A stretch of 62,657 bases of DNA from Macrostomum lignano (GCA_002269645.1 NIVC01004055.1:1-62657); one strand, 5' to 3'; shown: positions 23,875 through 47,383, counted from the first letter of the stretch. Notes: a model not told the origin generated them from the letters alone. Program-made: numbers and translations.

Positions 23875-25954
23875 TTGTGGGACGATGAGCCAGTAAGTAG
23901 TATAGAAAAAAAGGCGAGCGAAGCGAGAATTTTTTTCTATGGTGCTTACTTTTGCGAAATCGTCCCTGATAAGATGTAACGTGGTTGCACACACTAAAAA
24001 TGACGTTTTTCAACTTTGAAACGCTGCGCAGAAAAAACGGTACGACCGATTTACAAACTGTTTTTGCCAAAATGTGTCAAAGACCTAGCGCTATCGGATG
24101 CACAATAGTTGGTTGCTATGGCAACGCATTTTGGTTGCCATGGCAACCAAAAACTGCGTTTTTTCGACTTTGTCAAAAACTTTGATCTCAAAAAATAAGG
24201 ATTGAGAATATGGCAGCGCTTAGCGAGTGGGCTCAGTAAACGCGGGCATTTAAACGCTACAATGATCAGAAATGGATTTTTTGATTGTACTTTAACTTTT
24301 AGGGTAAAAGTACAAAAAACGTGTTTTTTGAGGTCGAAAAATTGGCATTTTTTTCAACTTTGCCTTACCGCAGCGAAAAGGACGCGCTTTCGCGCGGCCT
24401 TTGAGCTGCCTCCTAGCCTTAAAAACACTTAAGGCTGTTTGATGCGCTAAATTTTTTTCGGCTAAAATGTACTTTTCACATGGCTGCCTATCTGCTGTTT
24501 AAAAGTACAAATTTTTAGTGCACTTTTGTGAGGCCTATGGCGTCGAGATGGAAAACTTTATTTTTGATGTTTTTTATACCAAATCACTCAACTGGATGTC
24601 TTTTAATCAGAAACATCGACATTTGGCCGATTGGGCCATCAATAACCTGCCCAGGTGCCAAAGAGTGCCTAAAAACGTCGTTTTCGAAAAAGTGGGTCAC
24701 GTTTTAAAAAAGCAGTCCTCAAACTTGAAAAAGTGTTTTATGCTACGGTGTTGAGACTTTAACACGACGTGTCAAACATATGGAAATTTGTTTTCCTGAA
24801 TTTTCTAAGCATTTGGACCTACCTGTGCTGAGCAGTGACCCGGAAACCAGGGAAAAAAGGGGCCGGGGGGACTGCAAAAAAACAGACGTTGTTAAGGAAA
24901 TTTTTTTAAAATGGGGCGAACTTTTTCGAGTGTAGGGTCAAATTGTAACCCATCGGATGCCCTTTTGAATGACATAAGACACTCCTGAAAAAATCCCTGT
25001 TAACAGGTACTTTTTACCTGTTATGTGAAAAACGGCCCATTTGGGGGTACAAACTTTGAAGTCGAAAAATAAGAATTTTTGCGCACCGATTTTTCTGCAT
25101 TTTCAATATTGTTTAGTCGAATAGCTGAAGTTACACCGGTCATACGCCAATATGGCTGGAAAATTCGTATTTTTGAGAAAATTGGCTCCGAATTTTGAGA
25201 AGGCCATTTTTGGGCAAATTTTAAGCATAATTTTGGTAATAACTCTGCATTGGCAAGGCCTAGAGACTCAATTTTGGTGTCTAAAAACAGCACTATGGAT
25301 GCACTATGCAACTAAATTAGTTTTGAAAACTGATTCGCTGGTTAAAAGGTGGTAATACGTGTTTGAATACCTGTCAGAACAGGTGAAAATTCATATTGTG
25401 GCGCCTAGCAGCCGTAAAAATTTGTTGACATAGTTTGAAATTGCATTGGATGAGTGCGCCTTGATGTTATCTCTGCAACGACATGCGACTCGTATTTTTA
25501 GGTAAAGGCGTTGCGATGCAGTGAGCAGAAATGTATGAAGAAGCAGCAAAAATCGTAAAAGTGGCTACCATAGGGAATATTCGATATAAACGGCGTGCAC
25601 TGTAGAGCTTTGCTTAAGCGAGAGATGGATCGGGGCGAAGGCAGTTGCTCTGTAAAATACATGTACCCGGGTTCGAATCCCAAGTGGACCAGGTTTTTTC
25701 TATATTTAATTTTTTTAGCAGGAACGGATTTATTAGTATTTTCAATATAATTTAATATTGATTGTTTAATTTTCCTTTCCTTGTATACCTTATTAAAGAG
25801 TAAGAGTGAAGCTGAAAGTGCGGCACAGATGATTTGTTAGTGCAGAAAGGATATTACGATACATATCGGCAAGTATCATGTGTTGCGCGGTCGCCAAAGG
25901 CTTACAAGCAGTTTTAGCATGCTAAAAAGATGTGTTAGAGGTGGGAAAAGTTGC

Positions 25955-26690
25955 GGAGGGGTGGGGTGGGGAGCGGGGGTGTGGGGTGGCAGCCCCCACG
26001 TTACGCAAACCCCACAACAACAACCACCCACCCCAACAACAATGCGCGGGAGGGGTGGGGGAGCGGGGGTGTGGGGCGGCAGCCCCCACGTTACGCAAAC
26101 CCCACAACAACAACCACCCTCCCCAACAACAACGCGCGGGAGGGGTGGGGGAGCGGGGGTGTGGGGGCGGCAGCCCCCACGTTACGCAAACCCCCAACAA
26201 CAACCACCCTCCCCAACAACAACGCGCGGGAGGGGTGGGGGAGCGGGGGTGTGGGGGCGGTAGCCCCCACGTTACGCAAACCCCACAACAACAACCACCC
26301 TCCCCAACAACAACGCGCGGGAGGGGTGGGGGAGCGGGGGTGTGGGGGCGGCAGCCCCCACGATACGCAAACCTCACAACAACAACCACCCTCCCCAACA
26401 ACAACGCGCGGGAGGGGTGAGGGAGCGGGGGTGTGGGGGCGGCAGCCCCCACGTTACGCAAACCCCACAACAACAACCACCCTCCCCAACAACAACGCGC
26501 GGGAGGGGTGGGAGAGCGGGGGTGTGGGGGCGGCAGCCCCCACGTTACGCAAACCCCCAACAACAACCACCCCCTAACAACAACAACAACAACAACCCCA
26601 ACAACAACATAAACCCCAATAAACAACAACCCCTTTTACAACCAACAAACAACAACAACCGCCTTAACAACCCTTTCTACACAACAGCAG
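25955..26690 (+). repeat. ~90-bp CAA minisatellite, 7 copies (unit starting 23875)
   Basis: Direct tandem repetition. Confidence 0.9.
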
Positions 26691-27061
26691 AGTGGATATT
26701 CTTTTAATCTAATAAAATATTTTTTATTATTATATTTCTACAGTTATGTATAAACTTTGTTTAAATCAAATTGAAAATGTAGCCCATTAAGCTTCTTAGT
26801 TCTTCATACGTTATAGCCGTAAAATATAAAAACACGATATAGCGTTTTAATTAGTTCTTAATTTGGGTTAAATAAATAGGTCATAGCCATAAACAATAAT
26901 GGACATAATAAACCATCATAAGTATTTTTATTAATTATTTTAAACAGTTATGCTTAAACTTTGTTTAAACTAAATTATAATCAACTAAGCTTCTTAGTTT
27001 TTTAATTTAAAATAGGCCATAAAAGTTACGAACAATATATAAACCATATATATATATATAT

Positions 27062-28110
27062 ATTTGAATACTGATTCCTAGGTTCGCAGGTCTTAATACC
27101 TGTTTGAATACCTGTCAGAACAGGTGAAAATGCATATTTTGGCGCCTAGCGGCCTAGGAGGCGTAAAATTTGTTGACGTAGTTTGAAAATGCATTAGATG
27201 AATGCGCCTTGATGTTTTGATTTTAACGACATGCGACTCGCATTTTTAGGTTAAGGCGTTGCGATGCAGCGAGCAGAAATGTATGAAAAAGCAGCAAAAT
27301 TGGTAGAAATGGCTGCTATTAGCGATATTTGATATAAAACGCGTGTACTGTAGGCGAATCTAGTAAGCTACTGGTGGCGCAGTGGCAAAGTTAGTTGCCT
27401 CATAATTGAGCGCTCTAGGGTTCGATCCCCAAGTGGAGTGATAACATTTTTTGTTTTAAAGTTTTTTTAGAGCAAACAGATTTTTAGTATTTTTTATTTC
27501 TCTTACTCTTATGTTTTTTATACAATTAAATTAAATTTAATTTGAATTTATTTTTTCTTTTTATACGTATTTAAAGAGTAACAGTCAATCTCTTAGTGCG
27601 GCACGTATGATTGTTAGTGCAAAAAGTAGATTACGATACATGTCGGTAAGGAAGTATTTGGTGTCTGGTCATCTGAAGGCTAGAAAATAGTTGTAACATA
27701 TTAAAGAGACGTGGGAAAAGTTGTGGAGGGGTTGCCGGGAGCGGTGGGCGTGTGGGAGCGGGGGGTGAGGGAGCGGGGTTGGGGGAGCAGGGGTGGGGAG
27801 CGGGGTTGGGGGTGCAGGGCAGAGGTGGCGGAGCGTGGGGTGGGAGTGCGGCCAGCCCCCCCACTTTACCACTAGTAGACTAACTAATGCCAGGGGCGTG
27901 GGGGGGCGGCCAGCCTCCCACTATACCACTAGACTAACTAACGTCACTATAACTCACAATTATATAGTGATCCTTGGTGGAATAGCCTGACGCGAGTCGG
28001 AATTGTGTATCATTTATTTGGAAATTTGACGGAACGTATTTAGTATGTAAAAATATTCGTTAGTAAGATATATTTTGGCAGTTAATATAAACTTAGAATA
28101 GATTTTTGCT
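27062..28110 (+). repeat. 5'-truncated second copy of the unit tail (ACCTGT cluster, B-type tRNA-like module, degenerate minisatellite, segment shared with E4)
   Basis: Starts TTGAATACTGATTCCTAGG (cf. TTGAAAACTGATTCTTAGG at ~4437). 27970-28110 resembles 12505-12660. Confidence 0.75.
27375..27452 (+). promoter_or_regulatory. tRNA-derived A/B-box module with consensus boxes
   Basis: TGGCGCAGTGG (27375-27385), GGTTCGATCCC (27419-27429), TTTTTT at 27447-27452. Confidence 0.65.
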
Positions 28111-30773
28111 TTTACAATGTTTTAAAAAATTTAAAGAGAAAGAAGTTTTTGCGTCCACCTTGTTTAAATGGGGATAGAAGCAATGGCTGCCGAAAAATTC
28201 AAAAATTAAGCGCCGCGCAATCTAACTTAACCGATGAATGAAAAAGAATCTTTCTTCTTCAAACGTTTAAATTTAGAAAATTGATTTAAGTATTCATTTA
28301 AGTATTCAAATTCCATTTCAGTTTCCCTTTCCCTAGTAGTTTGTTTTTTGTTTTTTTTCAGCAGTAGTTTGCTTTTTGCTTTTTGTTTTTTCCCCAGTAG
28401 TTTGCTTTTAGGTTTTTGCTTTTTGCTTTTAGTTTATTAATTTCTATTGTTAGAAGTTTCGTATCAACTAAAGTCCAATTGTAAGTTTTGTATCATTTGC
28501 AATAATATTACTGTTTTGTACTTTTTTACTATGTATATGGCCATATGGATATGGTGCTTTAACATATAAGCAGTAAATAATATGGTTATCTGTTCGACAG
28601 CAAAAGATTGCACTAAATTTTGTTTATTATAAAAATACTAAGAATCTTTTTGTTGCCTATTGCCTATAGTGTGTATACTTATTTGTAATTTGACTAATTT
28701 GTATTTGTCGATTCTCTAAGAATTATATATCATGTAATATATCAAGTATATATCATTATATATTAAATATTATATATTATGTATAGTGGTATAGCCTTTT
28801 AAAAGCTAGAATAAATATAGCTGGACACAAATTAAATTGAGATGGAGACCTTATTGATATGAAAAATTAGCCTTACAAAAAGCAGGAAGCCAATGTTTTT
28901 TATATTCTTATTTTTGTTGCTATTTTATATTTATTTTTATTACAGATATAGTCTCTTTATTTATACTATAGCCCCACTCCCAAATCTTACATATATGGCA
29001 GAAAATTCTGGTATACATTAGACCTGAAAATATGCTTAACATATATTATATAATATCTAGTGTAACACAATAGCTATACCAATTGTGCACCATTGCGCCA
29101 GTGTATTAGGTGTCTAGCATAGTCTGTAGATGTCTGGCATGGCAATAGTTGGCTATTGATGTATGAAAGAGAAAGAAAGAAAGAAATGTAGGAAAAAGAA
29201 AGAAAGAAATGTTAAAACAAGATAAAAAACAAGGAATACTATACAATAGTTATTATTTATTTATTTAGAGATTTTTGTGTCTATAAAAGTAAAAAATAAT
29301 TTCATTTAAAAAAGGGACTTAAAATTTGAGTTAAAATTTAGAATAGTGTTGCAATATCATTCTGGTATACATATCATGTGCAAGATTTATTCTGGTATAA
29401 ACCTAAATTTATGGTATAAGGGGTCATTTTTGCCAGTATACCATAATGCAGAAAGCTCCGAATTGTGTGTAGGGCAGCTATATATCTTATATATATAGTA
29501 AGTCATATAATATTTGAATTAATATTCCAATTAACAAAAAGTAGCAATAAATCAAGATTAATTTTGGTATACATCCCTATAAGAAAAAGTTGTAAAGCTG
29601 CAGACAATGTCCGGCACACTTTTGGAAATTTTTCTAAAGCTCAGTGTGCGCACAAGTGCGCAGCGCTTGTGCATGCATTGCCTTTTCTTGCTGGCTGCTG
29701 CTTTAGCAAATAAATATATATGCAAGAGGGTCTAATACCTTTGAGGAAGGGGCCTATAGACTCATAATTTCTCGTATAATGCTTAAAGATATTCCAAAGT
29801 TTGATTTTGATTTTCCAAAATTTTGGAAGCATATAAAAGAGTGGCAAAAAATAAACAAATTAGTGCTATAAATACATGTCTTTTGTTTTGTATAAGCAGT
29901 AAATCAAGAATAAAAAAATGAGTTTTGGTTTGAGTAAACTTTGTTTTTTTTGCATTTTGACTTTAGAAAATTTTACAATTTTTTAAAGTTAGCAAATTTC
30001 AATTTCAATAGAAAATGCAATTAAAACATTGCAAAACATTGCAATTAAAACATTAGGTAGATGGCACCATGTATAAAAATAAAGCATTAGGTGGATAGCC
30101 AATGTGCACACAATTAAAACAATGGGTGGATGCTGCCTAGCTATGCACATTCAATGTTAAACCTGAAACCTAAAAATTCTATATTCCAAGTTTATGTCAT
30201 GATTGTCAGTGAGGGCAAAAATATAATAGAATTTTCTAGCATAAGGGCCACTTTCTAGACAATAATATATATTCATTTAGAAAGCTAGAATAAATACAGA
30301 ATAGACAACTATTCAGTGAGGGCAAAAATATGGTAGAATTGTCTAACATAAGCGCCATAATAAATAAGCGTATAACATATGTACTTGATAAACAAAGGAT
30401 TGTTGCAATTAATATGCAAAGAGTTTATAGCCTCCATGCAGCTCGGAGCTAATCAAACATGAGTAAACTGCTACTATTGCTGATGTTTGCATTCCCTTCT
30501 TGGTTGGTGAGGTCAGAATTGATGGAGAAGTGTTTCCCGAGTCTCCTCAGCCTGCTGGTTGCAACTGCTTAGTCTATCCAGGCAGTCAGTCAGTTGGCCA
30601 AATTTGGCTAAATCCACATAGTTGTCAAATAGTTTTGTTGTGCGCAGATCTCTGTTAGCGCACAACAATGTGTGCCTGCCTACCTAACCCATTGGGTCAA
30701 CAATAGCAAATTTGCCAGCAACATCATTGACTTTTGCACCTTATAGTTAACAAAAAAGAACTTTAAAAAGTCC

Positions 30774-30870
30774 AATCAGGGAATCAGTGCCCTAAGTCAC
30801 TGAGCCGGTCTCTGACCTCAGTGCCAAATCAAGGAATCAGTGACCCAAGTCACTGAGCCGGTCTCTGAGC
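30774..30870 (+). repeat. 53-bp direct duplication with internal hairpin
   Basis: AATCAGGGAATCAGTGCCCTAAGTCACTGAGCCGGTCTCTGA at 30774 and AATCAAGGAATCAGTGACCCAAGTCACTGAGCCGGTCTCTGA at 30827. The second copy has a perfect TCAGTGAC/GTCACTGA stem. Confidence 0.85.
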
Positions 30871-32504
30871 TCGGTTTCAATGATAACCTTAGAGAACAAC
30901 TCACAGAAGCAGTGACAATTTAGGTCATTCATTCAAACTACTGGGCTAAAAAACTCGGCTATATTTTGCAGTCATATGGAATTTTGCATTTGATCTGAAA
31001 ATTTTTAACTGAGTTTGAATACTTGTAAATAAAGCATTTACAGAAATGCAATTAGCTTGTATTTAGTTTTTTAAAAACAAAGAAGCAAACAGATTGTTTG
31101 GGTTCTTCTCGATAGCCACAGTCACGTGCATTCTCATCGAGCCTTGGTGAAGTAGCACCTCGGCAGCCTCTCTATGATCTCGACAGCCGAGTTGTACAAG
31201 TTCATGTCGAAGCTGGAGCTCTGCGAGTCAGAGAATGGCTATATTTAGTACATTACTAAAACTTTTAGAGCTACAATTTAGCTGATATTTGGTCTTCTCT
31301 TTGCTTTAGCTTTATTTAAAATTTTAGCTTTCCCTTACTAATATAGTGTAGTTTTCAGAAAATTTTATATTCTTTAAAACAAAAAGCTGCACAAGTTTGC
31401 AAGCATAGAGCCTATGAATATTTTATTATTTTATATACAAAATGCTCTTTATACAAAAAATTGTCTTTGAGTATTATAACCTAATATTAGCTTAATTTTT
31501 ATACCAAAGAGCTTGCTTGCACAATAGCCATGCACATATACCTATTATTGAATTGCATGCATGGCACAGCAGCTAGCAATTGATTTAATCAATTTTAATC
31601 AATTGAGAATTGGGGTCCTTAAATCAATGCATTGGTATTGGCAAACCTAATTAAAAATTATTGTTATTAGATTGTTTTATAATGTTATATCGCACATAAA
31701 GAATAAAACTAAAATTATAACTATTATTATAAATATAAACCTACAATGGGTGTAATCTGGGCTAATTCCATCAAGTAAATGAGTTCTTGTGTATATATAT
31801 ATATATATGTATAGTTTTAAATATTTAAGAAATATGTTTTGTAAATAGACAAACAATTAAACTCTTTGTGTCTAACTTTGTGCACTACTTGAGCATCAGG
31901 AAGCTAATAGTATAATGACCATCCTTTCCTTATATGCCAAGTTGTTTTGTTTAATGTAACAATTTTGTTTCCATAAGACACAAATGCAAAGACTGCATTT
32001 CTACCAATTCCATATATCACCAGAACCCTTATGTTTGAGATCTTGATAGAAGCTAACATAAGTCTGGTGCAAATCTCATTTATACTTAAGTTTCAGAACA
32101 GAAAAGCAAACGAGTAGTACAGATTAAAATCTCATTTAATCTTGATGTATTAACACTTTAACACTTTCAACAATTATTAAGGAGTATGCCGCCGAAAGGA
32201 CCTGGAAGGAAGCCTAAACGCGCTACCTACGGGCGGCCATTCGAGTCTAAAACGAAGCCGCCAGCCGCCGCTATTGATTGCAAGACAGGCGAACCTGCTG
32301 CTGCTGCTTTCTTTCTTTCTTTCTTTTTCGGGTCACGGACATTGTAGCTAGACGTAGCTAATAGGACCGGGGGCGTAGCCCCATGCAGCCGGGGCGCTGA
32401 CCCTGCGCGGGCGGGCAGTAGACGGCGGAATCCAATTTGCGGCCTGCGGCGGGTGGCCAGAGAGCGTGGGGACCCGAGTCCCGGTGCGCAGGGCTCCTCC
32501 GCAG

Positions 32505-33346
32505 ACCGACTTACGCTGTAAAAACCGCTGCTGCTGCTGCTGCTACTGCTATTGAGCCTGAATCAAGCACACCTGGTGTCGCTACTGTTGTATCGGAAGT
32601 TACGAATTTCGCAGTTGCTGCTGCTGCTTCTGGTGGTTCTGACAATGTTGTTGCTGCTGAAGATGCGACTGTAGACTATGAATTGCGCAATGCTGCTGCT
32701 GCTTTGAAGGAGAGTGGATTGTGTGACGAAACTCGCGGTAAGCTTGTGTTACTCCTTGCCATTGCCAACTTTCACATACGACGGAATAGATTGTAACGGA
32801 ACTGGAATAGTTGGATTCAGATGTCATGAAAGTTGGATGATAAAGTTTAGAATGCTGTTTTAATGTATATGCTTGAATTATAAGCCTATAACTTAGTATT
32901 ATACTCACCCTAATGTGCTTCAGACTGCCCAATTCCTGTTGTCGTGTCTACTACTGATGAATTAGCAGGACAACAAGCTGAATTGGACGAAGCTGCTGCT
33001 GCACTTAGAGAAGCAGGTTTTTGCCACACTGACGGTAAGGCCTGTCTTAGCTTACTGTCTATTACGGGTGGAATAGTTTTTTAAAATCAAGATTTTGAAA
33101 TTTAAAGAAAGCTTATATAGGATCTACAAGTGACACTATTGGTATCCAAGATTTTCTAGGACCCAGTTTTTGTTTGGTCATATCTCAGATTTCTCAATAG
33201 AGAAATTCCACAAATGCTACTTTGCATTTTGTCAATGTAGTATTGTGATGTCCTTTATTTGGTTTGACCTACGTTGTTTTTTTGCAGTTCAGCTTCAAGA
33301 ATTTTTGGGGAGTAGCGATTATGAAGGATTATGGTTCGTTCGTTAA
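32505..33346 (+). CDS. Predicted small spliced gene, Ala/Glu-rich, unknown function (exons ~32505-32737, 32924-33034, 33288-33346; 5' end uncertain)
   Basis: GTAAG donors at 32738 and 33035; acceptors TTCAG (32923) and TTTTTTTGCAG (33287). Both introns are phase 1 and join in frame to a stop at 33344-33346. Two exons repeat the motif ELxxAAAALxExGxC. Confidence 0.55.
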
Positions 33347-33721
33347 GGAATATTCTTTCACAACATTTACAGCGCCATTTTCGAACCAATCTTGTTAGAG
33401 GACTTTTTGCTGGTTGGGTGGGTTTTTATGGAAAATTAAGTTTAATAGCTTGAGTTTTGAAAGTAAAGTTTTCAGTAGTCACTTAAAATGTTGCTTAAAT
33501 GGTTTAGATCGATCGATCGATGCAATTATACGAACTAAAGACGGCCTTGAGCACGGTCAAGAGCGCTTCTAGGCAAGTGTGCTGGTGACTTGATCCAGAC
33601 ATATCGCGGCTGGGTCAGAAATTGCAGATATCAGTTGTTGGAGGGTTGTAAAGCACTAGCACTATAGTGCTGTAAAGTCAGACCAAGGTAAGCTGATCCA
33701 ATTCTTGATTACAGAAAGTAC

Positions 33722-36700: not shown

Positions 36701-39700
36701 GTAAAGGACTTTTGGTTTCGTATCGAGTATCAGAGTCGAGGAAGCCCGCATGTTCATGGCTGCGTTTGGATGCCGGACGGAGTGGATGTGACTTCGGAAT
36801 CCTTGCAAGCAGAAGATTTGGTTGCCTTTGTGGACAAGTACATTTGCAGTTGGAACACGTGCATGGACGAATCAGATAGCGGTCGCGAAATTTTGTCCGG
36901 CGGAGTAGGAGCGCAGCCGGCTCGATTGAAGCCGTCCGAAATTAAGGACGATAAAGCCGATTTGCAAGCACTTCTTCACAACAACATGAGGCACTCAAGG
37001 TGCAGTAATCGCTGCCTACGAAAGGAAAAGAACGGCTCTATGAAGTGTCGATACAAATATCCGCGAGATTTGCAGACAAAGACTGTCGCCAAAAAGCTGT
37101 CAAGTTTAAACTGGAAGGTTGAGACGCAGCGCAACGACCAATATATTGGCATGTACAATCCTCAAGTACTGTGCATGTGGAGAGCTAACCTAGACATTCA
37201 GATGATTTCTTCGGCCAAAGATTTGATTCGCTATTTGATCAAGTATGCAAGCAAAGGAGAGAAGGAATCGGAGCAGTTGCAAGAGTTGAATCGTCGCTAT
37301 CTTTCTATGGAGCAGCAGCAGGAGTCAGTGGACATTGATAATGCAGCAGAAAATGATAATAATCAGCAGCAGCATGACGAGTATAGTCGAACAAATACTG
37401 CACGTCGCATTGTTCAGCAGCACTTGATGATGCAAGTTGGAGCGCGCGACTATTCAGCACAAGAGGCTATGCATCTGGTATTACAGACACCGATGTACAA
37501 GGCGTCGCGAGAGTTTGTCTACGTTCAAACTGGCGAGACTAGAGCGATTGAGAGTCGAGGCGTTTGCAAGAATAGTATTGAAAAGTACGCAAATCGGCCG
37601 GCACAATTGGAGAATGAGACAATGTATCGATTCTTTTCGGACTATATTCCGCCGATGCGTCAACAAAGACGCGGTGGTGAACAAGTTGCCGTCTACAAGA
37701 AGCGACTAGCGGGCAAGGAAGCAGTTTTGATTGTGAGTCCGTTTTTGCGCTCAACAGAAAGCGACGATAAACGGCGCGAACAATACTATCGGCAGCAGGT
37801 ACTACTGTGGAGCTGTTGGCGAACCGAAGAGCAAGCAAAGGGATCGCATGCAAGCTGGCGCGAGGCCTACGAGGCGATGATGCAAACGGAAGCGTGTCAG
37901 CTGGTTGTGCGCGATTTGGACGACCTGCGCAACGATGAAGCCGACGAGGAGGAACGCGAAGCAGTCGCCGATTTGCCAGACATGACTGCCGCGAATGCCG
38001 AATCAGTTGCTGGTCCAGCTTATCCGGAGCGTCAGCAAGAGGATTGGATGGCAGCACTGGGTGCAAAGCATGCGGACATTCAGCTGAATGTCAACAAGAA
38101 TCCGGAAGACACTCTGCCAGTTGCGCCAGAAGGTTTCGATTGGAGTGCTGCTTCAGATTGGCAATTTCCGAGTCTGGCAGAGGCAAAGCAGTTTTTAATG
38201 ACCGAACTGACTAAGCCTGTTAGACGTGTAGCTGGAATTACCATCGAAGATGGTGCAGGCGCTAATCGTCAAACGATTGACGTTTCACTGCTTAATGAGA
38301 GACAGCGGAAGCTCTACGACATGATTGACAATCAATTGAAGCTTGAACGGCTGGCCGAAAGTGACACGACTAACAATAGTACTGAGTCGGGAAAGATGCC
38401 TCCACCACTGCGAGTAATTTTGTATGGCAGCGCTGGAACAGGCAAGAGTTTTCTGATTGCTGCACTACGAAAATTGATTGGCGAGGACAAGTGCAAAGTA
38501 ATGGCACCGACTGGTGTGGCTGCGTTCAACATTGCTGGCGAGACACTGCATTCAGCGTTGAAGTTGAACGTAAAGTTTTCGACTACGGCGTGTACTACTA
38601 ATGCTGACGGTTCAACGACTTCGGGCAGCAGCAAGGCATTGTCAGACATGCAATCGGTATGGTCAAACGTGCGCTACATAATCATTGACGAGTTTAGCAT
38701 GGTTGGCCAAAGGACACTGGCAAAGGTGCACAACCGTCTGTGCGAACTGTTTCCTGAGGAGAAGCGAGACACGCTTGAAGAAGGATATTTCGGCGGACGG
38801 TCAATCATTTTGGTTGGCGATGTGTTTCAGCTGCCTCCCGTGCAAGACAAACAGCTGTACGTGTTTAACAAGAATGCCAAAGATAATTTGACACCGATTG
38901 GCTATCAAGTGTATCAGAGTTTCAAAACGGTTGTTTATCTAAACAAGCAGGTGCGTCAAGCAAATGACACAGAGTTTGCCAGCATTTTAGAGTCTCTTCG
39001 CGAAGGCAAAGTAACCGAAGCCATTTGGAAGACTGTAATGGACAAGTGTCAAGTAGCAGCTGCAGACATGCTACCGCTAGATGTTGATGGCAAATGCACG
39101 CTATTGTACCACACAAATGAAGATGTGTCTAATGCCAATTGTGAGGAGCTGCGAAAAATTGTCGATGATAACAATCCGGTGCGGATAATCAATGCAACTT
39201 GTACTGGAAGGCAACCGCTGATTGGCAACAATGCTGCTGATAGTAGCAAGCAGAAATCGGAGACAGGCCTAGCCAGGCGACTATTTCTGGCGATTGGAGC
39301 ACGTGTGATGTTGACTCGGAACCTATCTGTGCAAAATGGCCTGGTGAATGGCTCGGTTGGTACGGTTCGTGGCATCTGCTACGCGAATGGAAAGAAGCCG
39401 CCAAATGATTTGCCCGACTGCGTTTGGGTTGAATTCGAGCGCTACAATGGCCCGGCAATGCAAGCCATGCGGCTGCCCAGAGAAGATGGTAATAGTAGTA
39501 GCAGCGAGTGTGCACCGACAGTTTCTGTTGTGCCAATTCTACCAGTATCAAGCCAGTGGCTTCAGCGAGGCGCCAGCTTGTCGAGACATCAGTTTCCGCT
39601 GAGGCTAGCCTGGGCAATCACTATTCACAAGTCGCAAGGCCTAACGATTGACAAGGCGTTTGTACAGCTGGGCAAGGGCCGCAAGTCGCCGCCAGCAGGT

Positions 39701-39853
39701 CTGTACTACACTGCCGTGAGTAGAGTTCGTGCTTTGTCTGATCTGTTTGTTACCTGTTGCGATTTCGTTAGATTTCAGCGCCTATTTTCTACAGGCGGTA
39801 TTGTAGCACAGGTAAATGAACAGAAGCGATTATTAGATTTGTGCGAGAAATGA
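33722..39853 (+). CDS. Helentron/Helitron2-type RepHel transposase: OTU protease-like domain, Cys-rich region, HUH/Y2 Rep domain, PIF1-family SF1 helicase
   Basis: Uninterrupted 2043 codons. OTU GDGNC (C49) ... EHY (H164). CxxC..CxxC from ~aa 539. Rep motifs FVTLSAAD (~926), EYQSRGSPHVH (H1010/H1012), YLIKY (Y1171/Y1175). Helicase GSAGTGKS (1569), APTGVAA, DEFSM (1656), GDVFQLPPV, HKSQG (1969), YTAVSR (1996). True start codon is uncertain. Confidence 0.95.
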   Translation: MSFNFKGVATLEDDTEDRGGLATLQVGRAPQWMPLSACWLKRIPGDGNCFFSALSDQLQGTALEMNADNLRQTLAVELENWIDSAENDTGISEAEWRDLLEKTKRKGEYVSDHVASAAARLLGIEIYVYQDMGAGSNLEGIYLGPIGVEPRATVRLHFNRQGEHYQSVHVRQSSHLAAVDDGAAKMMPPPPPPPAIPMQSVAQKVQEWKEVKCNRRACKRVPGAAATDVDNKFSIRVDENRFNVLWNVDLDADEEEPTLSVCSGDDSTSKVSSSVSRRSRRNRSVPSCPTRRSSRLSAKACSSSNASVLSSAEASDSCASSVVRRRKRVVKPGSPMRRSERLLAKKRRMEEGDDASSVGASNLSSIGAATESDKVSCIAREEEFELASVVLEEINDYQRPTKTKSQQRGGQNGQSKSRSSPRKKAIDEQSIPTDTVLEASPTKRRRTKVNTVKEGRSSPRKKAQIEQQQQQQQRVEIEAEEPEIEHVDPEENNPDAEEQGASDTSLPQCLRNPFTKQYKKMRNEFFQECTSRLSNLKRCLVCKERFPCVYFRQQSDASCQRCVTDYGKPKLFSDENNANPMCEQPEELRDLSVAEQMLISPILSVIVVYRLFPQGQHASRGHGIMFPQDQASVVRELPRRTLPVVLMYDKKLQNNPGSTVTGAMNNLRVRRDKVLNAIRYLINNNQYFQRFSVGIDREALNSLPENGYAQQINEMVNQMDTQDVNVDLDAAEEEARQPEEDEQRQQMEEAQLEETTSALLNTPLRRLEVKIRDRLLEEKLQWPRSSRVPVNEFEQEGLFSLAYPHLFPDGKGDYKTPRVRSIGLGDYAKHLMQFHCPRFRCDPRFRFFIENMVMRWRALEVGRVFVHDKNLAGLSAPEMLEKLKDPAVMSSVSARASELRGTASYWQSKRRQLEAMIKTIGLPHYFVTLSAADIQWPELLQVWQIEEDVDNDNWQEIKQELLSRLQKDPGMADTVFWIRFELFLQKFFVEHWKVKDFWFRIEYQSRGSPHVHGCVWMPDGVDVTSESLQAEDLVAFVDKYICSWNTCMDESDSGREILSGGVGAQPARLKPSEIKDDKADLQALLHNNMRHSRCSNRCLRKEKNGSMKCRYKYPRDLQTKTVAKKLSSLNWKVETQRNDQYIGMYNPQVLCMWRANLDIQMISSAKDLIRYLIKYASKGEKESEQLQELNRRYLSMEQQQESVDIDNAAENDNNQQQHDEYSRTNTARRIVQQHLMMQVGARDYSAQEAMHLVLQTPMYKASREFVYVQTGETRAIESRGVCKNSIEKYANRPAQLENETMYRFFSDYIPPMRQQRRGGEQVAVYKKRLAGKEAVLIVSPFLRSTESDDKRREQYYRQQVLLWSCWRTEEQAKGSHASWREAYEAMMQTEACQLVVRDLDDLRNDEADEEEREAVADLPDMTAANAESVAGPAYPERQQEDWMAALGAKHADIQLNVNKNPEDTLPVAPEGFDWSAASDWQFPSLAEAKQFLMTELTKPVRRVAGITIEDGAGANRQTIDVSLLNERQRKLYDMIDNQLKLERLAESDTTNNSTESGKMPPPLRVILYGSAGTGKSFLIAALRKLIGEDKCKVMAPTGVAAFNIAGETLHSALKLNVKFSTTACTTNADGSTTSGSSKALSDMQSVWSNVRYIIIDEFSMVGQRTLAKVHNRLCELFPEEKRDTLEEGYFGGRSIILVGDVFQLPPVQDKQLYVFNKNAKDNLTPIGYQVYQSFKTVVYLNKQVRQANDTEFASILESLREGKVTEAIWKTVMDKCQVAAADMLPLDVDGKCTLLYHTNEDVSNANCEELRKIVDDNNPVRIINATCTGRQPLIGNNAADSSKQKSETGLARRLFLAIGARVMLTRNLSVQNGLVNGSVGTVRGICYANGKKPPNDLPDCVWVEFERYNGPAMQAMRLPREDGNSSSSECAPTVSVVPILPVSSQWLQRGASLSRHQFPLRLAWAITIHKSQGLTIDKAFVQLGKGRKSPPAGLYYTAVSRVRALSDLFVTCCDFVRFQRLFSTGGIVAQVNEQKRLLDLCEK

Positions 39854-41687
39854 GCCAGCAGTATTTGGCAGTTTTTAACTGAAAATGTGCACGAATCTAT
39901 ATAATATAGAGCAAACAATGGCTCTGAGAAAAAACGGTGTTTGCGGTCTTAATGAAAGTCTTGCGCGTTGCTTTTGTGTGTGTTAAGTGTAGTACAGTGT
40001 TTTGTTCTTAAATAGCCGTTTCTCCTAGGCTTTGAATAGCTATATAGGACTGATTTAATTTCGTTAGATTGGGATTGGGAAGTATAAAGCAAAATAAGCA
40101 TTTCAAGTCGTCTTAAGTCGTTTTAAATCACTTTTTAATTAACCATACAGTGTTATCAGCCACCTTGCTCAGTTTATCAGTCAAAAAGTTGAATAGTTTA
40201 TTTAATCAATTTAAATTCATTTTAATATTTGAAAAAGAGGTTTGATTTCGGGGTATTTCTTTTAAATTCGTTTTTAAATATTGTATAAAATGGATAAGTA
40301 AAGCAACGCGCAAGGCTTTCACTCTGTGAAGCGTGGGGCTGACACGTGTGCCAGGGTAGACTATTGACGAGTTATGCCAAAGTGCTGTCAATAGTTTGCT
40401 GTTGGGTCACAAGGATAATATATGAATTGTGATTGAGTGTCAGTCTAATAAATTTTCGGCCTGAGTTACGCAGATAATTCTGGCGGGTACTTATGCCTGT
40501 TGGTTAGATAAGTCTCGTGCTGTTGCGTGACTATTCGGTGTCTGTTGAATAAGCTTCTTAAATATGTATGCATAGGTGTTATCTTGGTAGCTAAGCCAGT
40601 TAAAATGTATCATATAAAGAATTATTGAGCAAGAAAATATACAAACACAAAGGAGATCTTTTATTTTGTAGGATTGTAGTTAGTAAGACATTAATTACGA
40701 AAAGTATAAAAATATTCACAGTTCTAGTAGTTGCTCAATAATCTCTCAATAATTGCAATTATTCCAAGACTATAACGTCTTTAACAACAGTTTATAAGTA
40801 TGTAAGTAGTTTCCTTTTCTGTTGTGAGAGTATAGTCTAAAATGTTTATACCAAAGTGCCCGATAAATTAAAAAAGAAGCTTGTTGAAACGACAAAACCA
40901 GTCAGAGGAGTACCAGAACTCAGAGCTGTGAGTGCCATGCAGTTTTAAAGGTTGTTCTAATTGTTTATGTGAGTGTCATTTAGCAGTATTTTTAGGAAGA
41001 AATTTTGGTGGGAAAAACTGAATAATAACTCAATACACGATTTGAGTAAGATTCATAGCGCCCTTAAGTGCCTGACAGCCCCCCACCAAATATTCCTTGA
41101 TTTGGAAGCACTTTAGCACGTGTTCGGCACCAAATTGTACTTTATAGGTAGGCGCCCTGTTCATCCCTATCGAATAAAAATCCTACATCCGCTACTAAGC
41201 CATGTGTAAACTAAATTGGTTCAATCGACATATTTAATGGTCGGAGTTACATTCATAAATATTTATTAAGAATCTACTGATAATTATTTCCCAGTAGAGT
41301 AACAAATTAAAGTCATATGAATAGGACCTTTATAGTTAACGGTATATCCGGTTTCGCCTTAAAAGTGCATTTTAAGTGTAGGAACATTCAAATTAAATAA
41401 ACACCTTAAACTGCAAAGGGCACGGGTTTACAACAGCAAACCTTGAATGATACGCTGCAGGGCTGACACGCAAACACGTCTGACAAGGTGAAACGAGAAG
41501 GTGCATTTTAAAGGTGCAACCTGATAAATTATAGCACAAAGTGTGCGAATGACCTGTCAGAATCGTATTAGTGCTAAAAAAGCAAGTGTTTTGTTACTTT
41601 GTATTTTGGTTTTTTGTCTTAGATTGATTTTAAATTTCGTCTACTATATTGGCTTCTTACGTAATTTCGGGACTAGAGGAGATAGTT

Positions 41688-41948
41688 TCTCAAATACTTT
41701 GGTGTTTAGACGGGATCTTGGGCTCTCAAATACTTTGGGTGATTAGAGGGGATCTTGGGCTCTCAAATACTTTGGGTGATTAAAAAAGATTATGGGCTCT
41801 CAAATACTGTGATGATTAGATGGGAATGTACGTGGCTTCTCAATTACTGTGATGATTAGAAGGGATTTTGGCTTTTCAAATACTCTGCTGATCAGAGGAG
41901 ATCCTGGCTTCGTGAATACGTTTGGTGATTAGAGGGGATCTTGGGTTC
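41688..41948 (+). repeat. Degenerate ~37-bp tandem repeat, about 7 copies
   Basis: TCTCAAATACTTTGGGTGATTAGAGGGGATCTTGGGC-like monomers at 41688, 41724, 41761, 41798 and 41838. Confidence 0.85.
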
Positions 41949-42344
41949 TTGGCCAAATAATTATTTGGGAATTGCGGATTCTGGCTGCTTCTAAAGCAAC
42001 TGTGGGTTTATTGGGAAAAGACGGGGCAATACGAGCTATCTAGAATGAAATATGGTCCGGTTGAAATTGGGTGAAGGGATGATTAGGTTCACTGACATAC
42101 TGTATATGAATATAATTCCATAATTTTTATTGTATGCGTTATTTCATTCATTAAAATGTGTTTTTATGCATTCGGTATTCTTGTTGTTCCGTATATGGAT
42201 TTTTTCCTCAGCTCAAAATTGTTACATTTCAAGCATTTTTGACAATTTATTTTTCCACTTCTTTCTACTGTTTGTACATGAAATGCTTCTTTCGCATCCA
42301 TATCATCAGTACTCCATTCGTGTAGTTGCGAAACATTTAGAAAG

Positions 42345-43660
42345 ACCAGAAGCACTGCAAATCAGGTAAGCTTTCATTTGTATTATTCACCATTGTCATG
42401 ACTATATGACACCCTCTATTTGTTTTTTTTATTTAAATGACAAAAAGTTGTAAACCAATTTGACATTTACATGTAACACGAGCCAGGGCGTTGCGACTAA
42501 GTCATTTACAACTGCAGCGTACCTGACGTGCAAGATGTTCACCGACAGCAACCAAGGTGGTACGCAGTGCCAGTTGTTCATTCACCTGCTGGGCGGTCTG
42601 GTGTCAAACTTTCAATGACTGGCATGCATGCGATCGCTACAGCGAGACATACAGTTGAAAAACTGTTTCTGAAATTTAGAAAAACGAAAAGCACTGCAAT
42701 TCAGGTAAGCTTTCATTTGTATTATTCACCATTGTCATGACTATATGACTCACTATTTGTTTTTTGATAAAAGTTGTAATCCAATTTGACATTTACATGT
42801 AACACGAGCCAGGGCGTTGCGACTAAGTCATTTACAACTGCAGCGTACCTGACATGCAAGATGTTCACCGACAGCAACCAAGGTGGTACGCAGTGCCAGT
42901 TGTTCATTCACCTGCTGGGCGGTCTGGTGTCAAACTTTCAATGACTGGCATGCATGCGATCGCTACAGCGAGACATACAGTTGAAAAACTGTTTCTGAAA
43001 TTGAGAAAAACGAAAAGCACTGCAATTAAGGTAAGCTTTCATTTGTATTATTCACCATTGTCATGACTATATGACACACTATTTGTTTTTTGATAAAAGT
43101 TGTAATCCAATTTGACATTTACATGTAACACGAGCCAGGGCGTTGCGACTAAGTCATTTACAACTGCAGCGTACCTGACATGCAAGATGTTCACCGACAG
43201 CAACCAAGGTGGTACGCAGTGCCAGTTGTTCATTCACCTGCTGGGCGGTCTGGTGTCAAACTTTCAATGACTGGCATGCATGCGATCGCTACAGCGAGAC
43301 ATACAGTTGAAAAACTGTTTCTGAAATTGAGAAAAACGAAAAGCACTGCAATTAAGGTAAGCTTTCATTTGTATTATTCACCATTGTCATGACTATATGA
43401 CACACTATTTGTTTTTTGATAAAAGTTGTAATCCAATTTGACATTTACATGTAACACGAGCCAGGGCGTTGCGACTAAGTCATTTACAACTGCAGCGTAC
43501 CTGACATGCAAGATGTTCACCGACAGCAACCAAGGTGGTACGCAGTGCCAGTTGTTCATTCACCTGCTGGGCGGTCTGGTGTCAAACTTTCAACGACGGG
43601 TACTCAACGACTGGCATGCATGCGATCGCTACAGCGAGACTTAAAGTTGAAAAACTTTTT
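42345..43660 (+). repeat. 326-bp tandem repeat, about 4 copies
   Basis: Near-identical ORFs start at 42528, 42854 and 43180 (period 326). Confidence 0.95.
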
Positions 43661-43758
43661 CTAACAACGATGCTTATCTGATGATTGTAGTAAAAGTTCT
43701 CGGAATATTTACTACAATATTCACTTCATTCAAACTTATTATTATTTTTATTAATTTA

Positions 43759-44235
43759 TTAGTATTCAATGTAATTTGCATCAGAGGCAATAACCTCCTG
43801 CCAACGTCCATACAGAGAATGGATGCTTTTGCGGTACCACTCGGAGTTGTGAGAGTCGAATAAGTCACGCAGATGCTTCTCCAAGTCCTCCTCATCTTTG
43901 AAGCTGTGAGCAGCCATGGACTGGCTGAGCGCGGCAAAAGGTGGTAGTCGGTAGGCACAAGATCTGGGCTGTAATATGGGTGGAGAAGAACTTCCCAACC
44001 CAGCGTCAGCAGCATTGAGAATGGCCAGATATCTAGGTCACGAGTTGCCAGTTTATGCGACACCCAGCACTTGAGTTTAGCTTTTAGATTTCAAAACATA
44101 ACGCCTGTTGTCTGCTGATTGTTCTACGCGATGAGCACTTCCAGGGCATCGTCATCATTGAGTTCAGGTGAACGCTCACTTCAAGACGTGTCCTCAAGGC
44201 CCAGTTGTCCATTCTTGTAGCGCTTGTACGAGCTA
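43759..44235 (-). pseudogene. Internally deleted, frameshifted mariner (DD34D-type) transposase relic
   Basis: Minus strand: YKRYKNGQLGLEDTS*SERSP (HTH region), CWVSHKL (WVPHEL-like), GWEVLLHPYYSPDLVPTDYHL (YSPDL motif with third catalytic D), then after a frameshift FKDEEDLEKHL...LYGRWQEVIASDANYIE. Most of the catalytic core is missing. Confidence 0.9.
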
Positions 44236-44639
44236 CCAATCCTACACCCTGGAGGTCTTGATGGTGGACTGGGAATGGGACTCGGACTGGGAATAAGTAA
44301 TACCGTATTTATACTCATGAAAAAGTTCTAGAAAATTCAAGAAAAAAGTTGTATTGAAATGTTTTAAAAATTCCGAAAACTTTCCCTACAATCAGATACT
44401 TGAATACTGTTCAAATTCCATTGATACGTCCAAACTGCAAATGAAATTGTGCATTTATTAAGTGTTATGCTTAGCATTTTTTCTGTAAAAGTCTCTCACT
44501 CTCTGTTTAATAATACCCTATTTTCTTAACCAGTTAGCATCTTGTTATATTAGACAACTTTTCACATTTAGTGTACACACTTGTATGTTTTTCCAGAGTG
44601 TTTGTCTAAGTCTGTCTGATCGTATGTTCATCTCTTCAA

Positions 44640-44662
44640 CAGTCTGTCTGTCTCTCTGTCTC

Positions 44663-44700
<38 letters not shown>

Positions 44701-44830
44701 GGTTTGTCTGTTTGTCTGTTTGTCTGTCTTTCTGTCTGTTCAGCCGTTTAACTATCTTTCTGTTCATCTGTTTATCTGTCTGTCAGATTGTATGTTTGTC
44801 TCTTTTTCTGTCCATCTATCCATTTATGTA
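44640..44830 (+). repeat. (TGTC)n-type microsatellite, degenerate
   Basis: Directly visible. Confidence 0.9.
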
Positions 44831-45199
44831 TCTATCTATGAACCATATGTACGTCTATTTAATCTATAATATCTATAGAAGCAGTAAGAGTTAATTAAAG
44901 CTCCATTCGACAACAACTTTATGCAGTGACCCCTACTCTCTACTTCTTTCCTTTCTCCCCTCAGTCTTCTCTCTCTTATATCTACTGCCTGTATCTGTTT
45001 TGTTCAGGGTTCAGTACCAATCGGAAAATAAATATCACCTCCCTGATCTGGATATGATTTTGGCCAAATGCGTATTAGCCCTATGCCAAAGGTTAAAGTC
45101 TACGCTTAACTGATGGCTGACATGGCAGGCTCCTTGTCCTTTAAATCCAAGAAAGCAAAGCAAATTTAAATTCCATTCGCCACTAAAACTCTTTGGCTC

Positions 45200-45239
45200 C
45201 TTCCTCTCTCCTCTCTCCCTCTCTCTCTCTCCTCTCTCC

Positions 45240-45328
<89 letters not shown>
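45200..45328 (+). repeat. (CT)n microsatellite
   Basis: Directly visible. Confidence 0.95.
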
Positions 45329-45329
<1 letters not shown>

Positions 45330-45963
45330 AGTCTTCACTAGGCCCAGTCATGAGGTCTTTTGGCCTTAGTTCTTTGTCCATATGACAAAGTTCATATGTC
45401 TGTTTTCTGTCTAACTATCTATGTACTGTTTACTGTCAGTTTGTTAGTTGGCCTGTCTATGGATTACACTATCTTCGTAAGACAGCACAAGTTCGTTGTA
45501 AAACGTTTTTAGTTGAGTAGCGTTAAAACATTAATATTTTCCAGTAGCGCAATAGCGTTAGCGCAAACGGAGTATAATTAGGATTTTTTACAAATATTAA
45601 CAAAGGTTAACAAATTAGCCTAAACAGTTTTATAAATTAACGTAATTAAATTGCCATATTGTCACTCCTGTCAAAGTGTATTCTACTTATATTAGCAGCT
45701 AAGCTTTGCTACTCTCCCTTTTGAGTACTTTTTTATTCCGTTTCTTAAAAAATACAATTTTCATTTTAATAGAATTTTATAAAATTTTGAATTCGTTCCA
45801 TTTAATTTATAAAAGTTGATAAGGTAGTCAAATACCAACTCAAAGTAATGTTCGTGATTAGCCTATTGAGAATTTATACGAGCAGTGCAGTCTATGTACA
45901 GACGACACATTACAGACAGACAGTCACACAGCTAATATTAGTTGCACAACTTTCTTCTTTCAG

Positions 45964-46448
45964 ATGATCGTAAAACTATATTTCAATGAACAGGGAGGCG
46001 GGCGAGGCGAAGGCGGGCGAGGCGGTGGCGGGCGAGGCGGAGGCGGGCGAGGCAGAGGCGGAGGCGGGCGAGGCGGAGGCGGAGGCGGACGAGGCGGAGG
46101 CGGAGGCGGAAGCGGAGGCGGAAGCGGAGGCGGAGGCGGGCAAGGCGGAGGAGGAGATGGCGGCGGAGGAGGAGATGGCGGAGGAGGAGGAGATGGTGGA
46201 GGAAGAGGAGGCGGGAAGGGTTCAGTGCAAAGTAAGTCTGAATTAGTATAAATGTGTATATACATACACGTATGTATATAAATAGCAAAAACGCTTACAA
46301 TCATTTCTATATTGTAGAGAGATGCTTCGTCTGTAAGAAAATAGGGCACATTGCCCGTAACTGCTGGAAAAAAAAACAGCAGACAAAGCAACAAGAGCAG
46401 CCGCAACAGCAGACAACGCAACAAGAGCAGCAGGAGAAGCAGGGATGA
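45964..46448 (+). CDS. Predicted spliced Gly/RGG-rich plus CCHC zinc-knuckle protein (exons 45964-46231 and 46318-46448; may have upstream exons)
   Basis: Pyrimidine-rich acceptor ending at 45963; RGG/Gly-rich frame; GTAAGT donor at 46232; TTGTAG acceptor at 46317. The phase-1 join gives ...GGKGSVQKRCFVCKKIGHIARNCWKK (CX2CX4HX4C) followed by a Gln-rich tail. Confidence 0.6.
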
Positions 46449-46479
46449 CAGTGCATTTGGACTGAGGGTAGTTTTGTGT

Positions 46480-46860
46480 ACTAATGGCTAAATGAAAGGG
46501 AATAGAGAAAAGAGAAAAGGAAAGAGTAGATAAAATATTAGATGAAAGAGAACATGAAAAGAGAGAATTAAAAGGGATAGATTAGAGAAAAGAAAAAAGA
46601 GAATAAAGGCGAGAGAAGAGATGAGGGAATTGAGAGGAGAGAGGAGAGGGGTAAGAGAGGTGAAAGAGGAGACAGGAGGGAGTAGAGCCGAAAAGACGAG
46701 AGAGAATAGATAAATGAGTAGAGATGAGAAGAGGGAGAGGAGAGAGAAGCGAGAGGATAAGGGAGAGAGGAGAGGGTAGAAAGTAGAGAGATGACAGAGC
46801 AGAGAGGAGATAAAGGAGAGGAGAGAGAAGATGAGAGAGGGGAGAGAGAGGAGGGGAAAA
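46480..46860 (+). repeat. Polypurine (AG-rich) low-complexity tract
   Basis: Almost only A and G on the + strand. Confidence 0.9.
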
Positions 46861-47383
46861 CCCGTGTTTGAATCGCGTAAATTTTTAGTTTGTTTTTGTT
46901 AAGCATTTTTAAAATTGTTCAAACAGTTACTGTATTTTAACTTTGTGTTTATAAATGTAAATGTATGAAAATAAAATCTTACTGATCGAATGTGTTGTTA
47001 GCGTTAAATATATAATTACAAAGGTTTAATTGTCTTCCATGCAGCAAAGTATCTTGCGCTTATTTGGCAACTCTGATTGTAGCGGTGAACATTAACGCTT
47101 CGCATTTTGATGCACAGCACGGACGGAGTCCAGACAGAATGACAAATGTGTTAACTGTTGGTTGGTGTCTGCCCAAACTGAGCTTAGCTGCGCAAATATC
47201 ATTAGCCAAATATGCTGTGCTCTTTCTAACTGCTAGGGTGGCCCTGCGCCTGAGTGGCACACTCAATTATTGCTTCTTAATTAAGTTCTTAATTTGGTTT
47301 AATAAACAGGTCAAAGCCGTAAAAGTTACAAACATTAAAACCATCGTCCCACCTTTGAAGACGACAGCGTCTTCATTCACTAG

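Follow-up and report, generated by a model that had tools for sequence, protein, structure and literature searches.

Helitron-like elements of the HLE2 group have DUF6570 as a reported marker and carry terminal inverted repeats of 12-16 nt, the right one followed by a stem-loop; an endonuclease is reported to be limited to one HLE2 subgroup (PMC11417382). Helitron2 elements carry palindromes at both ends (PMC4067079, PMC13085455), and tandem Helitron arrays are known from Myotis Helibat, the centromeric Helitrons of maize and rice, Bombyx, and Helitron-1_DPe on the Drosophila pseudoobscura Y chromosome (PMC5876387, PMC9248874, PMC4067079 section 15). Here we describe a 62,657-nt stretch of Macrostomum lignano DNA (GCA_002269645.1 NIVC01004055.1:1-62657, referred to below as the window, with positions counted from its first letter). 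Our analysis indicates that the window is very likely a head-to-tail array of HLE2/Helitron2-type elements, in which the interval 23875-47383 (23,509 bp) would be a composite, transposase-bearing member lying in register with non-autonomous units.

The array runs on one strand, head-to-tail, through 11 exact junctions of the form ...CCATCGTCCCAC-cttt-GAAGACGACAGCGTCTTC-attcaCTAG|TTGTGGGACGATG..., and every copy in the window adjoins another copy (CTAG|TT). The 27-nt 3' end GAAGACGACAGCGTCTTCATTCACTAG occurs exactly 11 times, on the + strand only, compared to 0 occurrences in dinucleotide-preserving shuffles, and each occurrence is directly followed by TTGTGGGACGATG(G)AGCCAGTAAGTAG. These ends fall at 2990, 6769, 9791, 13039, 16676, 20853, and 23874 in the upstream array (units U0-U6, 1-23874, + strand, non-coding), at 47383, and at 51017, 54648, and 60286 in the downstream array (units U8-U11, 47384-62657, + strand). 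Besides two partial units at the window ends, the complete units measure 3,779, 3,022, 3,248, 3,637, 4,177, 3,021, 23,509, 3,634, 3,631, and 5,638 bp, with 23875-47383 as the length outlier among units of 3.0-5.6 kb. The first-pass annotation had proposed that the 5' end at 23875 has no partner until the 3' end at 47341-47383, and this holds, as a scan of 23889-47340 allowing 1 and 3 mismatches found neither the inverted-repeat arm nor the hairpin; across the window, the same scan placed arms and hairpins at junctions only. Its estimate of about 75 bp of array-type DNA before that 3' end was also fair, the figure being 103 bp compared to the satellite-52 units, about 70 bp compared to most others, and 43 bp compared to U3 (starts at 47281, 47314, and 47341, respectively). 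On the 5' side, array-type DNA extends for about 4.1 kb rather than about 3 kb, reaching about 27.95 kb.

The short units come in three structural types in the upstream array, namely those with a 91-bp satellite (types I/II), those with a 52-bp satellite (type S), and U3, which has a long tail. Each short unit contains a 91-bp or a 52-bp satellite, ORFs (open reading frames) longer than 100 amino acids lie only on satellite, and the termini are identical to those of the coding unit. The short units therefore look like HINE-type elements in their ends, 3' palindrome, noncoding content, and central repeats.

The big unit opens with a 5' terminus at 23875-23970 (+ strand), in which TT is followed by the 11-nt arm GTGGGACGATG (23877-23887) and a 20-bp hairpin between GGGACGAT and ATCGTCCC, and it closes with a 3' terminus at 47281-47383 (+ strand), in which a tail common with S-type units leads to the arm CCATCGTCCCAC (47341-47352), four bases, a hairpin, and ATTCACTAG up to 47383, with CTAG at the very end. 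The arms GTGGGACGATG(G) and CCATCGTCCCAC are reverse complements over 11-12 nt, the former at nt 3-13/14 and the latter 31 nt short of the 3' end. A second partner of the 5' arm is ATCGTCCC, some 85 nt downstream, and their pairing encloses the 20-bp hairpin. The 3' hairpin has an 8-bp stem (47356-47375 in the fold, with the core GAAGACG-ACAG-CGTCTTC at 47357-47374), lies 9 nt from the unit end, and is exact in 11 of 11 units. When folded as single-stranded DNA, these structures were far more stable than shuffles: the 5' end scored z = -5.5, the 3' end -4.1, and a junction -6.8. Units can be told apart by 5'-end variants (GATGAGCC versus GATGGAGCC), while the terminal 39 nt are invariant in all 11 units and in a second coding copy, L001 (M. 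lignano NIVC01000521.1, GCA_002269645.1). Since the bodies of the units diverge by 5-8%, this invariance argues for either constrained ends or very recent copying.

The transposase lies on the same strand as the array. Its main RepHel exon and ORF occupy 33722-39853 (+ strand), giving 2,043 amino acids from the ATG at 33722 (exon start 33741), and the reading frame is unbroken, as the first-pass annotation had it. Pfam identifies an OTU protease, DUF6570 (PF20209, residues 569-701, E = 1.1e-19), Helitron_like_N, which is the HUH Rep domain (E = 2.6e-29), and a PIF1 helicase (E = 1.9e-21). All 37 columns that are invariant among 29 full-length relatives are retained, including HxH, the two Tyr (YxxxY..K), Walker A, and Walker B. 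There was no Pfam match to an endonuclease (Exo_endo_phos) in the ORF, which stops about 30 amino acids past the helicase. Among the 29 closest full-length Rep relatives, DUF6570 is present in every one and Exo_endo_phos in none (29/29 and 0/29), while some more distant helicase matches (27-30% identity) do carry an endonuclease. The best solved-structure matches are PIF1 helicases, and Helraiser (HLE1, 7lcc) matches weakly (E = 3.5e-7), over the helicase C-terminus only. The nearest proteins are M. lignano models with 93-99% identity in clusters of 9, 5, 1, and 1, which indicates that the gene is multi-copy in this genome. Between the window copy and L001, the ratio of nonsynonymous to synonymous divergence (dN/dS) comes to 0.22 overall, with 0.10 for Rep and 0.11 for Hel, at a dS of 0.05-0.07. 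Since these ratios are low, the gene has diverged as a working gene rather than as inert DNA, with its coding sequence under purifying selection.

Mapping the annotated M. lignano model P0003 onto the window gives four exons. Upstream of the main exon, e1 (32186-32308), e2 (32527-32737), and e3 (32924-33034) form the RepHel 5' exons (32186-33034, + strand) and the fourth begins at 33741 (33741-39853). The last two introns, e2-e3-e4, have GT/AG splice sites. On the other hand, e1 and e2 are split by a 218-bp insertion (32309-32526) that is not in L001, so the annotated N-terminus is interrupted, although the OTU-Rep-Hel ORF keeps its own ATG. The insertion is GC-rich, has a (TTTC)n end, and sits inside a (GCT)n tract; it looks like a retroposon of the SINE (short interspersed element) type on the - strand. 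The first-pass annotation had predicted two spliced genes in the big unit. The only spliced gene we found is RepHel itself, and one of the two predicted genes corresponds to the transposase 5' exons. ORF lists, Pfam, and a protein search revealed no second gene in 26.7-32.2 kb or 39.9-47.3 kb.

We compared the terminal 330 bp of each unit with window positions 26650-27070. The big unit begins as a short unit, with segments a1, a2, and b at 23875-25958 (92-95% identity to other units), then seven copies of the 91-bp G-rich satellite that forms the central repeat of type I/II units (25959-26584), and then a short-unit 3' tail with a dead internal terminator (26703-27047; all on the + strand). 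This tail ends ...TATATAAACCAT at 27047 (...AAACCAT), four bases into the 12-nt arm and 39 bp short of the end of an intact unit. In place of the missing 39 bp, which would comprise the final 8 nt of the arm followed by spacer, hairpin, and CTAG, there is an (AT)8 filler (27048-27063, + strand) between the terminator-less short unit and a truncated coding element. The filler leads not into a 5' end but into a b' segment (27064-27713, + strand) at its middle, equivalent to about position 4436 of U1; at this point the coding element sets in, lacking about 1.45 kb relative to a native 5' end. This b' segment is 88% identical to the satellite-52, S-type units (U1 4436-5074) and only 78% identical to b of the other units. 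It is followed on the + strand by the 52-bp satellite that S-type units carry in expanded form, here in two copies (27837-27946), by an AT-rich spacer private to the window copy (27947-30376, GC about 0.28), in which neither the ORF list nor Pfam gave an ORF or a domain (27.95-30.38 kb), and by an upstream region common with L001 (30377-32185, 92-98% identity) that is presumed to be a promoter or 5' untranslated region.

The S-type units (U1, U5, and U10) read a1-a2-b'-satellite(n) and are joined straight to the roughly 103-bp tail of the big unit, which makes them look like internal-deletion derivatives of a native coding element. Together, these alignments indicate that 23875-47383 is a terminator-less 91-bp-satellite short unit, plus filler, plus a coding element lacking its first 1.45 kb or so. 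Given this composite structure, a usable 5' end is left only in the short unit, and a usable 3' end only at 47383. The first-pass annotation had offered two alternatives, an autonomous master flanked by its deletion products or a short unit that lost its terminator, and each is right in part: the S-type units look deletion-derived, and the big unit begins with a terminator-less short unit. What the big unit captured is, by sequence, the family's own coding core and not host genes.

The satellites show further variation. The coding unit has 2 copies of the 52-bp satellite (27837-27946), compared to about 19-64 in S-type units (5121-6656, 19751-20741, and 56777-60174), and the satellite monomer contains CACTAG, which also forms the terminal six bases of every unit. 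Eight units have, in their b/b' segment, a motif reminiscent of the box A and box B of tRNAs (TGGCGCAGTGG ... GGTTCGATCCC; 27375-27430 and 4784, 11590, 15721, 19347, 50061, 53695, and 56437), in which neither ARAGORN nor Rfam recognized a tRNA, even at E <= 1. Likewise, a search of the whole window for RNAs with Rfam and ARAGORN gave no match.

The second coding copy, L001, encodes P0003 and places the same core between the same ends elsewhere in the genome. Its element is 20,377 bp long, with the 5' end at 323 and the 3' end at 20699, both as in the window, and the next unit adjoins it; other copies bounded by the same termini, a check proposed by the first-pass annotation, are thus represented by one that has both. 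Window and L001 have in common a unit-like 5' module, the core, and the terminal tail. The 9.5-kb core (window 30377-39873, L001 7818-17568) is 92-98% identical, while window 27.95-30.38 kb is not shared with L001, nor is window 39874-47280 with L001 17569-20524. The L001 RepHel gene is broken by frameshifts and a stop (14536-15078), and relative to the window copy it has a 312-bp insertion in a low-complexity N-terminal linker. L001 is also composite, and its breakpoints differ. After the 91-bp satellite comes the first ~180 bp of a U3-type long tail (4140-4318), after which the core follows from the U1-equivalent position of about 4330; the complete U3-type tail lies at the end of the element (20334-20699), and the U3 long tail is collinear with the 3' end of this copy. 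We considered L001 as an uncomposed ancestor with U3 as its simple deletion and rejected this, as its internal 4140-4318 is a second, truncated U3-type tail. The two joints may reflect either one fusion remodelled on both sides or two fusions.

Near-identical units within the array point to copying that respects unit borders. U4 and U8 (13040-16676 and 47384-51017) are 99.8% identical, bounded exactly by the termini, with identity rising from 60% to 99.3% across the left terminus and dropping from 99.7% to 94.3% across the right; the neighbors differ. U2 and U6 (6770-9791 and 20854-23874) are about 100% identical, with the identity ending within 14 bp of the 3' terminus, and U1 and U10 (2991-6769 and 54649-60286) are 99.8% identical apart from satellite copy number. 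The neighbors of near-identical units differ by 5-40%. A higher-order repeat pairing U2-U3-U4 with U6-U7-U8, with U7 in the U3 slot, was also tried and rejected, as its 96% came from U2=U6, and U3 is only 92-93% identical to the 5' part of U7. Some identity tracts begin or stop inside units, such as the match of U1 from 4242 to U5 from 18669 and the 98-99% tracts in U5 and U9, so recombination and conversion also act. All 11 junctions are complete, and neighboring units belong to different structural types. Taken together, these patterns suggest that the array probably grew by unit-precise copying, either by insertion at resident ends or by rolling-circle read-through, followed by recombination and gene conversion.

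We propose that the hairpins and inverted repeats at the termini would direct RepHel to nick at CTAG|TT, and that RepHel would peel off one strand and reinsert it. Since the termini of the short units are identical to those of the coding unit, these units could be mobilized in trans by the same enzyme. The composite would have formed when a short 91-bp-satellite unit lost its last 39 bp, and with them its terminator, and was fused via (AT)8 to a truncated coding element. A self-contained amplification system, as the first-pass annotation had suggested, is plausible, although the first exon of the gene is split by the 218-bp insertion.

Other explanations fit parts of these data. If 23875-47383 were a plain autonomous master, original and uncomposed, all short units would be its simple internal deletions. 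This would account for the b', 52-bp satellite, and terminal ~103 bp that S-type units have in common with it, for the collinearity of the U3 long tail with the L001 3' end, and for the identical ends, as non-autonomous and autonomous partners with the same ends are the rule in the group (PMC11417382, PMC4067079). We consider it unlikely, as the short-unit tail at 26703-27047 breaks 39 bp early and is followed by (AT)8 and then by b' from mid-segment, b of type I/II and b' have diverged (78% versus 88%) as a fusion of two units would give, and the joint at the same place differs in L001. Far less credible, to the point of being nearly dismissible, is that the central block is resident, single-copy host DNA, with two arrays that arose on either side of it through separate insertion or expansion. 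Some 9.8 kb of the block (27.95-30.38 and 39.87-47.28 kb) was indeed not found in L001, but its core is a Helitron-type transposase gene with several near-identical M. lignano versions (clusters of 9, 5, 1, and 1), and the host-DNA scenario, which the first-pass annotation had named as fatal to its proposal, is contradicted by L001, where a 92-98% identical 9.5-kb core stands at a second locus between the same termini. Moreover, the left side of the block runs on from the terminator-less unit, and its right side ends in the family tail and terminus, with strand and register unchanged. The first-pass annotation is thus supported in taking the big interval for a transposase-bearing unit that lies in register and belongs to the short units' family.

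A chimeric join made by the assembler is very improbable as the source of the 23.5-kb unit. Arrays of 3-kb units that are 92-100% identical are hard to assemble, yet the L001 contig has the same arrangement of 5' end, unit body, core, family 3' end, and next unit, and the joint at 27047/27064 has a specific filler, unlike a simple repeat collapse. Somewhat better placed than any of these, though still doubtful, is growth by unequal crossing-over only, from an old insertion, with no recent transposition and the transposase copy as a passenger relic. Mosaic identity blocks that cross unit borders, satellite copy numbers that differ between otherwise identical units (U1 and U10), and the disabled L001 copy would all suit this explanation. 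On the other hand, the U4/U8 identity stops at the termini on both sides where the neighbors are different, perfect junctions join units of unlike structure, the termini stay the same although the bodies diverge, and a dN/dS of 0.1 in Rep and Hel shows that the gene evolved while working. Several points nonetheless weigh against the composite, in-register reading that we favor, besides the difficulty of assembling such arrays. Tandem copies do not fix the exact element boundary or target site; the first 1.3 kb of the big unit has no near-identical partner (at most 94.8%); the exact composite joint is seen in no second copy; and, with exon 1 split, the full N-terminus of the annotated relatives would need unusual splicing. 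In addition, the comparison of coding copies covers two, the window unit and L001, and their joints and 3' regions differ, so the ancestral architecture is one that we infer.

The only non-array left flank available, L001 1-322, reads ...ATATCAACTAG|TTGTGGG, so that the host DNA stops at the ACTAG with which the element itself ends. As a single case, this is a lead: the bases may mark a target, be left over from a lost unit, or agree by chance (odds of about 1 in 256 to 1 in 1,024). Together with the near-identical pairs U4/U8 and U2/U6, which sit between unrelated neighbors, it leads us to raise, tentatively, the possibility that the family favors its own 3' end (CTAG|TT) as a target, although the odds are against it. 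A nuclease recognizing CTAG|TT at both cleavage and integration would make each resident copy a landing site for the next, and serial end-to-end insertion, not read-through, would then yield mixed arrays with perfect junctions. Repeated loss of an internal terminator, as at 27047 and at the other break in L001, would then repeatedly give the coding core a new 5' module. If true, own-end targeting would offer a testable alternative to "terminator bypass" as an explanation for the growth of Helitron arrays.

The first-pass annotation had also described cargo genes in the big unit, and this claim fell away, as ORF lists, Pfam, and a protein search found none and the 7.4 kb of DNA after the stop codon consists of repeats that are not in L001. 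This 3' region (39874-47280), private to the window copy and with no gene found, contains a 37-bp repeat (41688-41949), a 326-bp tandem repeat in four copies (42335-43720), and (GTCT)n, (CT)n, GGAGGC-rich, and AG-rich tracts. Since three of the 326-bp copies are 99% identical to each other, they reflect recent local amplification. A frameshifted stretch at about 43677-44308 (- strand; LLHPYYSPDLVPTDYH...) is presumably the C-terminus of a mariner transposase, which Pfam did not confirm, and a lone CCHC zinc knuckle at 46254-46448 (+ strand) is a borderline Pfam match (22.7 bits compared to a cut-off of 20.8); both are probably debris of other transposons. There is no non-repetitive ORF above 130 amino acids in 39.9-47.3 kb. 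Across 26.7-32.2 kb and 39.9-47.3 kb, a Pfam search of all stop-to-stop fragments gave no match, and the concatenated fragments had no match at E <= 0.001 among 5.8 billion proteins. The 7.4 kb past the transposase gene is therefore repeat debris, made up of satellites, microsatellites, and transposon remains, and not cargo. A related M. lignano RepHel family (L002, encoding P0004), 52% identical in amino acids to the window protein, has minisatellites that begin directly after the RepHel stop codon, with periods of 15/19, 21/25, 19, and 21 bp (8218-9500, 12090-12970, 13320-13990, and 17580-18237). Judging from this relative, repeat accretion after the transposase gene seems typical in these families. 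No termini were recognizable in L002, where the contig begins 2.8 kb before the gene. Exact-protein look-ups aimed at further genomic copies led to DNA for P0003 (L001) and P0004 (L002) only, the window ORF and three other proteins (P0001, P0002, and P0007) having no record.

The features of the element place it, on sequence grounds, in the Helitron2-like part of HLE2. In common with HLE2, it has a RepHel with HUH/two-Tyr and PIF1 domains, DUF6570, short inverted repeats at its termini, and a hairpin that follows the right repeat. HLE2 elements insert between T and T without target-site duplication; the window copies adjoin one another (CTAG|TT), and the one non-array flank reads ...ATATCAACTAG|TTGTGGG. 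In common with Helitron2, it has asymmetric terminal inverted repeats, palindromes at both ends, and a single RepHel ORF without an endonuclease. Since DUF6570 is present and the endonuclease is absent, the element is HLE2 and Helitron2-like rather than a Helentron in the strict sense, which would carry an AP endonuclease C-terminal to the helicase. It also departs from canonical Helitrons (HLE1), which lack terminal inverted repeats and insert between A and T, as its 5' end is TT and not TC, inverted repeats are present, and the L001 flank ends in G; the likeness to HLE1 is limited to the 3' hairpin and CTAG.

M. lignano is a model for regeneration and transgenesis with a very repeat-rich genome, and it gains here a defined Helitron2-type family with exactly mapped ends, an intact-looking transposase ORF, and three non-autonomous classes that carry and expand satellites. 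This should be useful for repeat annotation and for understanding how satellites get seeded. The locus also gives a nucleotide-level example of how one internal-terminator loss in a tandem pair yields a larger composite element, and of unit-precise copying within an array. It adds no new kind of system and carries no host-gene cargo.

The papers that we searched contained no description of this M. lignano family. Among the closest known systems are the Helitron2-type elements, such as Chlamydomonas Helitron2 and FoHeli1/2 of Fusarium oxysporum, which have the same short asymmetric inverted repeats and palindromes at both ends, a single RepHel without endonuclease, DUF6570, and T at the 5' boundary, and for which tandem copies have been reported (PMC5148889, PMC13085455, PMC11417382). 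Unlike these, the window family ends in CTAG 9 nt after the hairpin, as canonical Helitrons do, has OTU fused in the same ORF and a 5' module of about 4 kb with satellites, and forms a long mixed array with complete inner copies. In Helentrons and HINE/DINE-1 elements, too, subterminal inverted repeats lie 2 nt in from the 5' end and a 3' palindrome lies 9 nt short of the terminus; the non-autonomous units have tandem repeats at their center and ends matching those of the coding partner, and OTU is often associated (PMC4067079, PMC7492417). However, the window family lacks the AP-endonuclease domain of Helentrons, its 3' arm lies 31 nt from the end compared to the 38-60 nt reported, and its short units measure 3-5.6 kb compared to a few hundred bp for HINE/DINE-1.

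Another partial match is proto-Helentron-Pi of Phytophthora infestans, which also combines a 5' TT with a 3' CTAG (PMC4067079 section 11) and is likewise long, at about 14 kb, with an HLE2-type RepHel lacking an endonuclease (PMC4067079 section 11; PMC11417382). Proto-Helentron, as described, has no canonical inverted-repeat layout and inserts between A and T, whereas the inverted repeats of the window family are canonical for HLE2 and its sole non-array flank ends in G (...ACTAG|TT). With regard to the array itself, head-to-tail junctions with no DNA between units are found in the known tandem Helitron arrays, where they are ascribed to rolling-circle read-through or terminator bypass (PMC5876387, PMC9248874, PMC4067079 section 15). 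The inner copies of known arrays are reported to be often 3'-truncated (PMC7492417), whereas in the window the ends are complete at 11 of 11 junctions; next to each other stand units of different structural types, and the sole truncated terminator lies inside the coding unit. Altogether, these comparisons indicate that the family is new, while the kind of system it represents, an HLE2/Helitron2-like element with HINE-like tandem derivatives, is already known.

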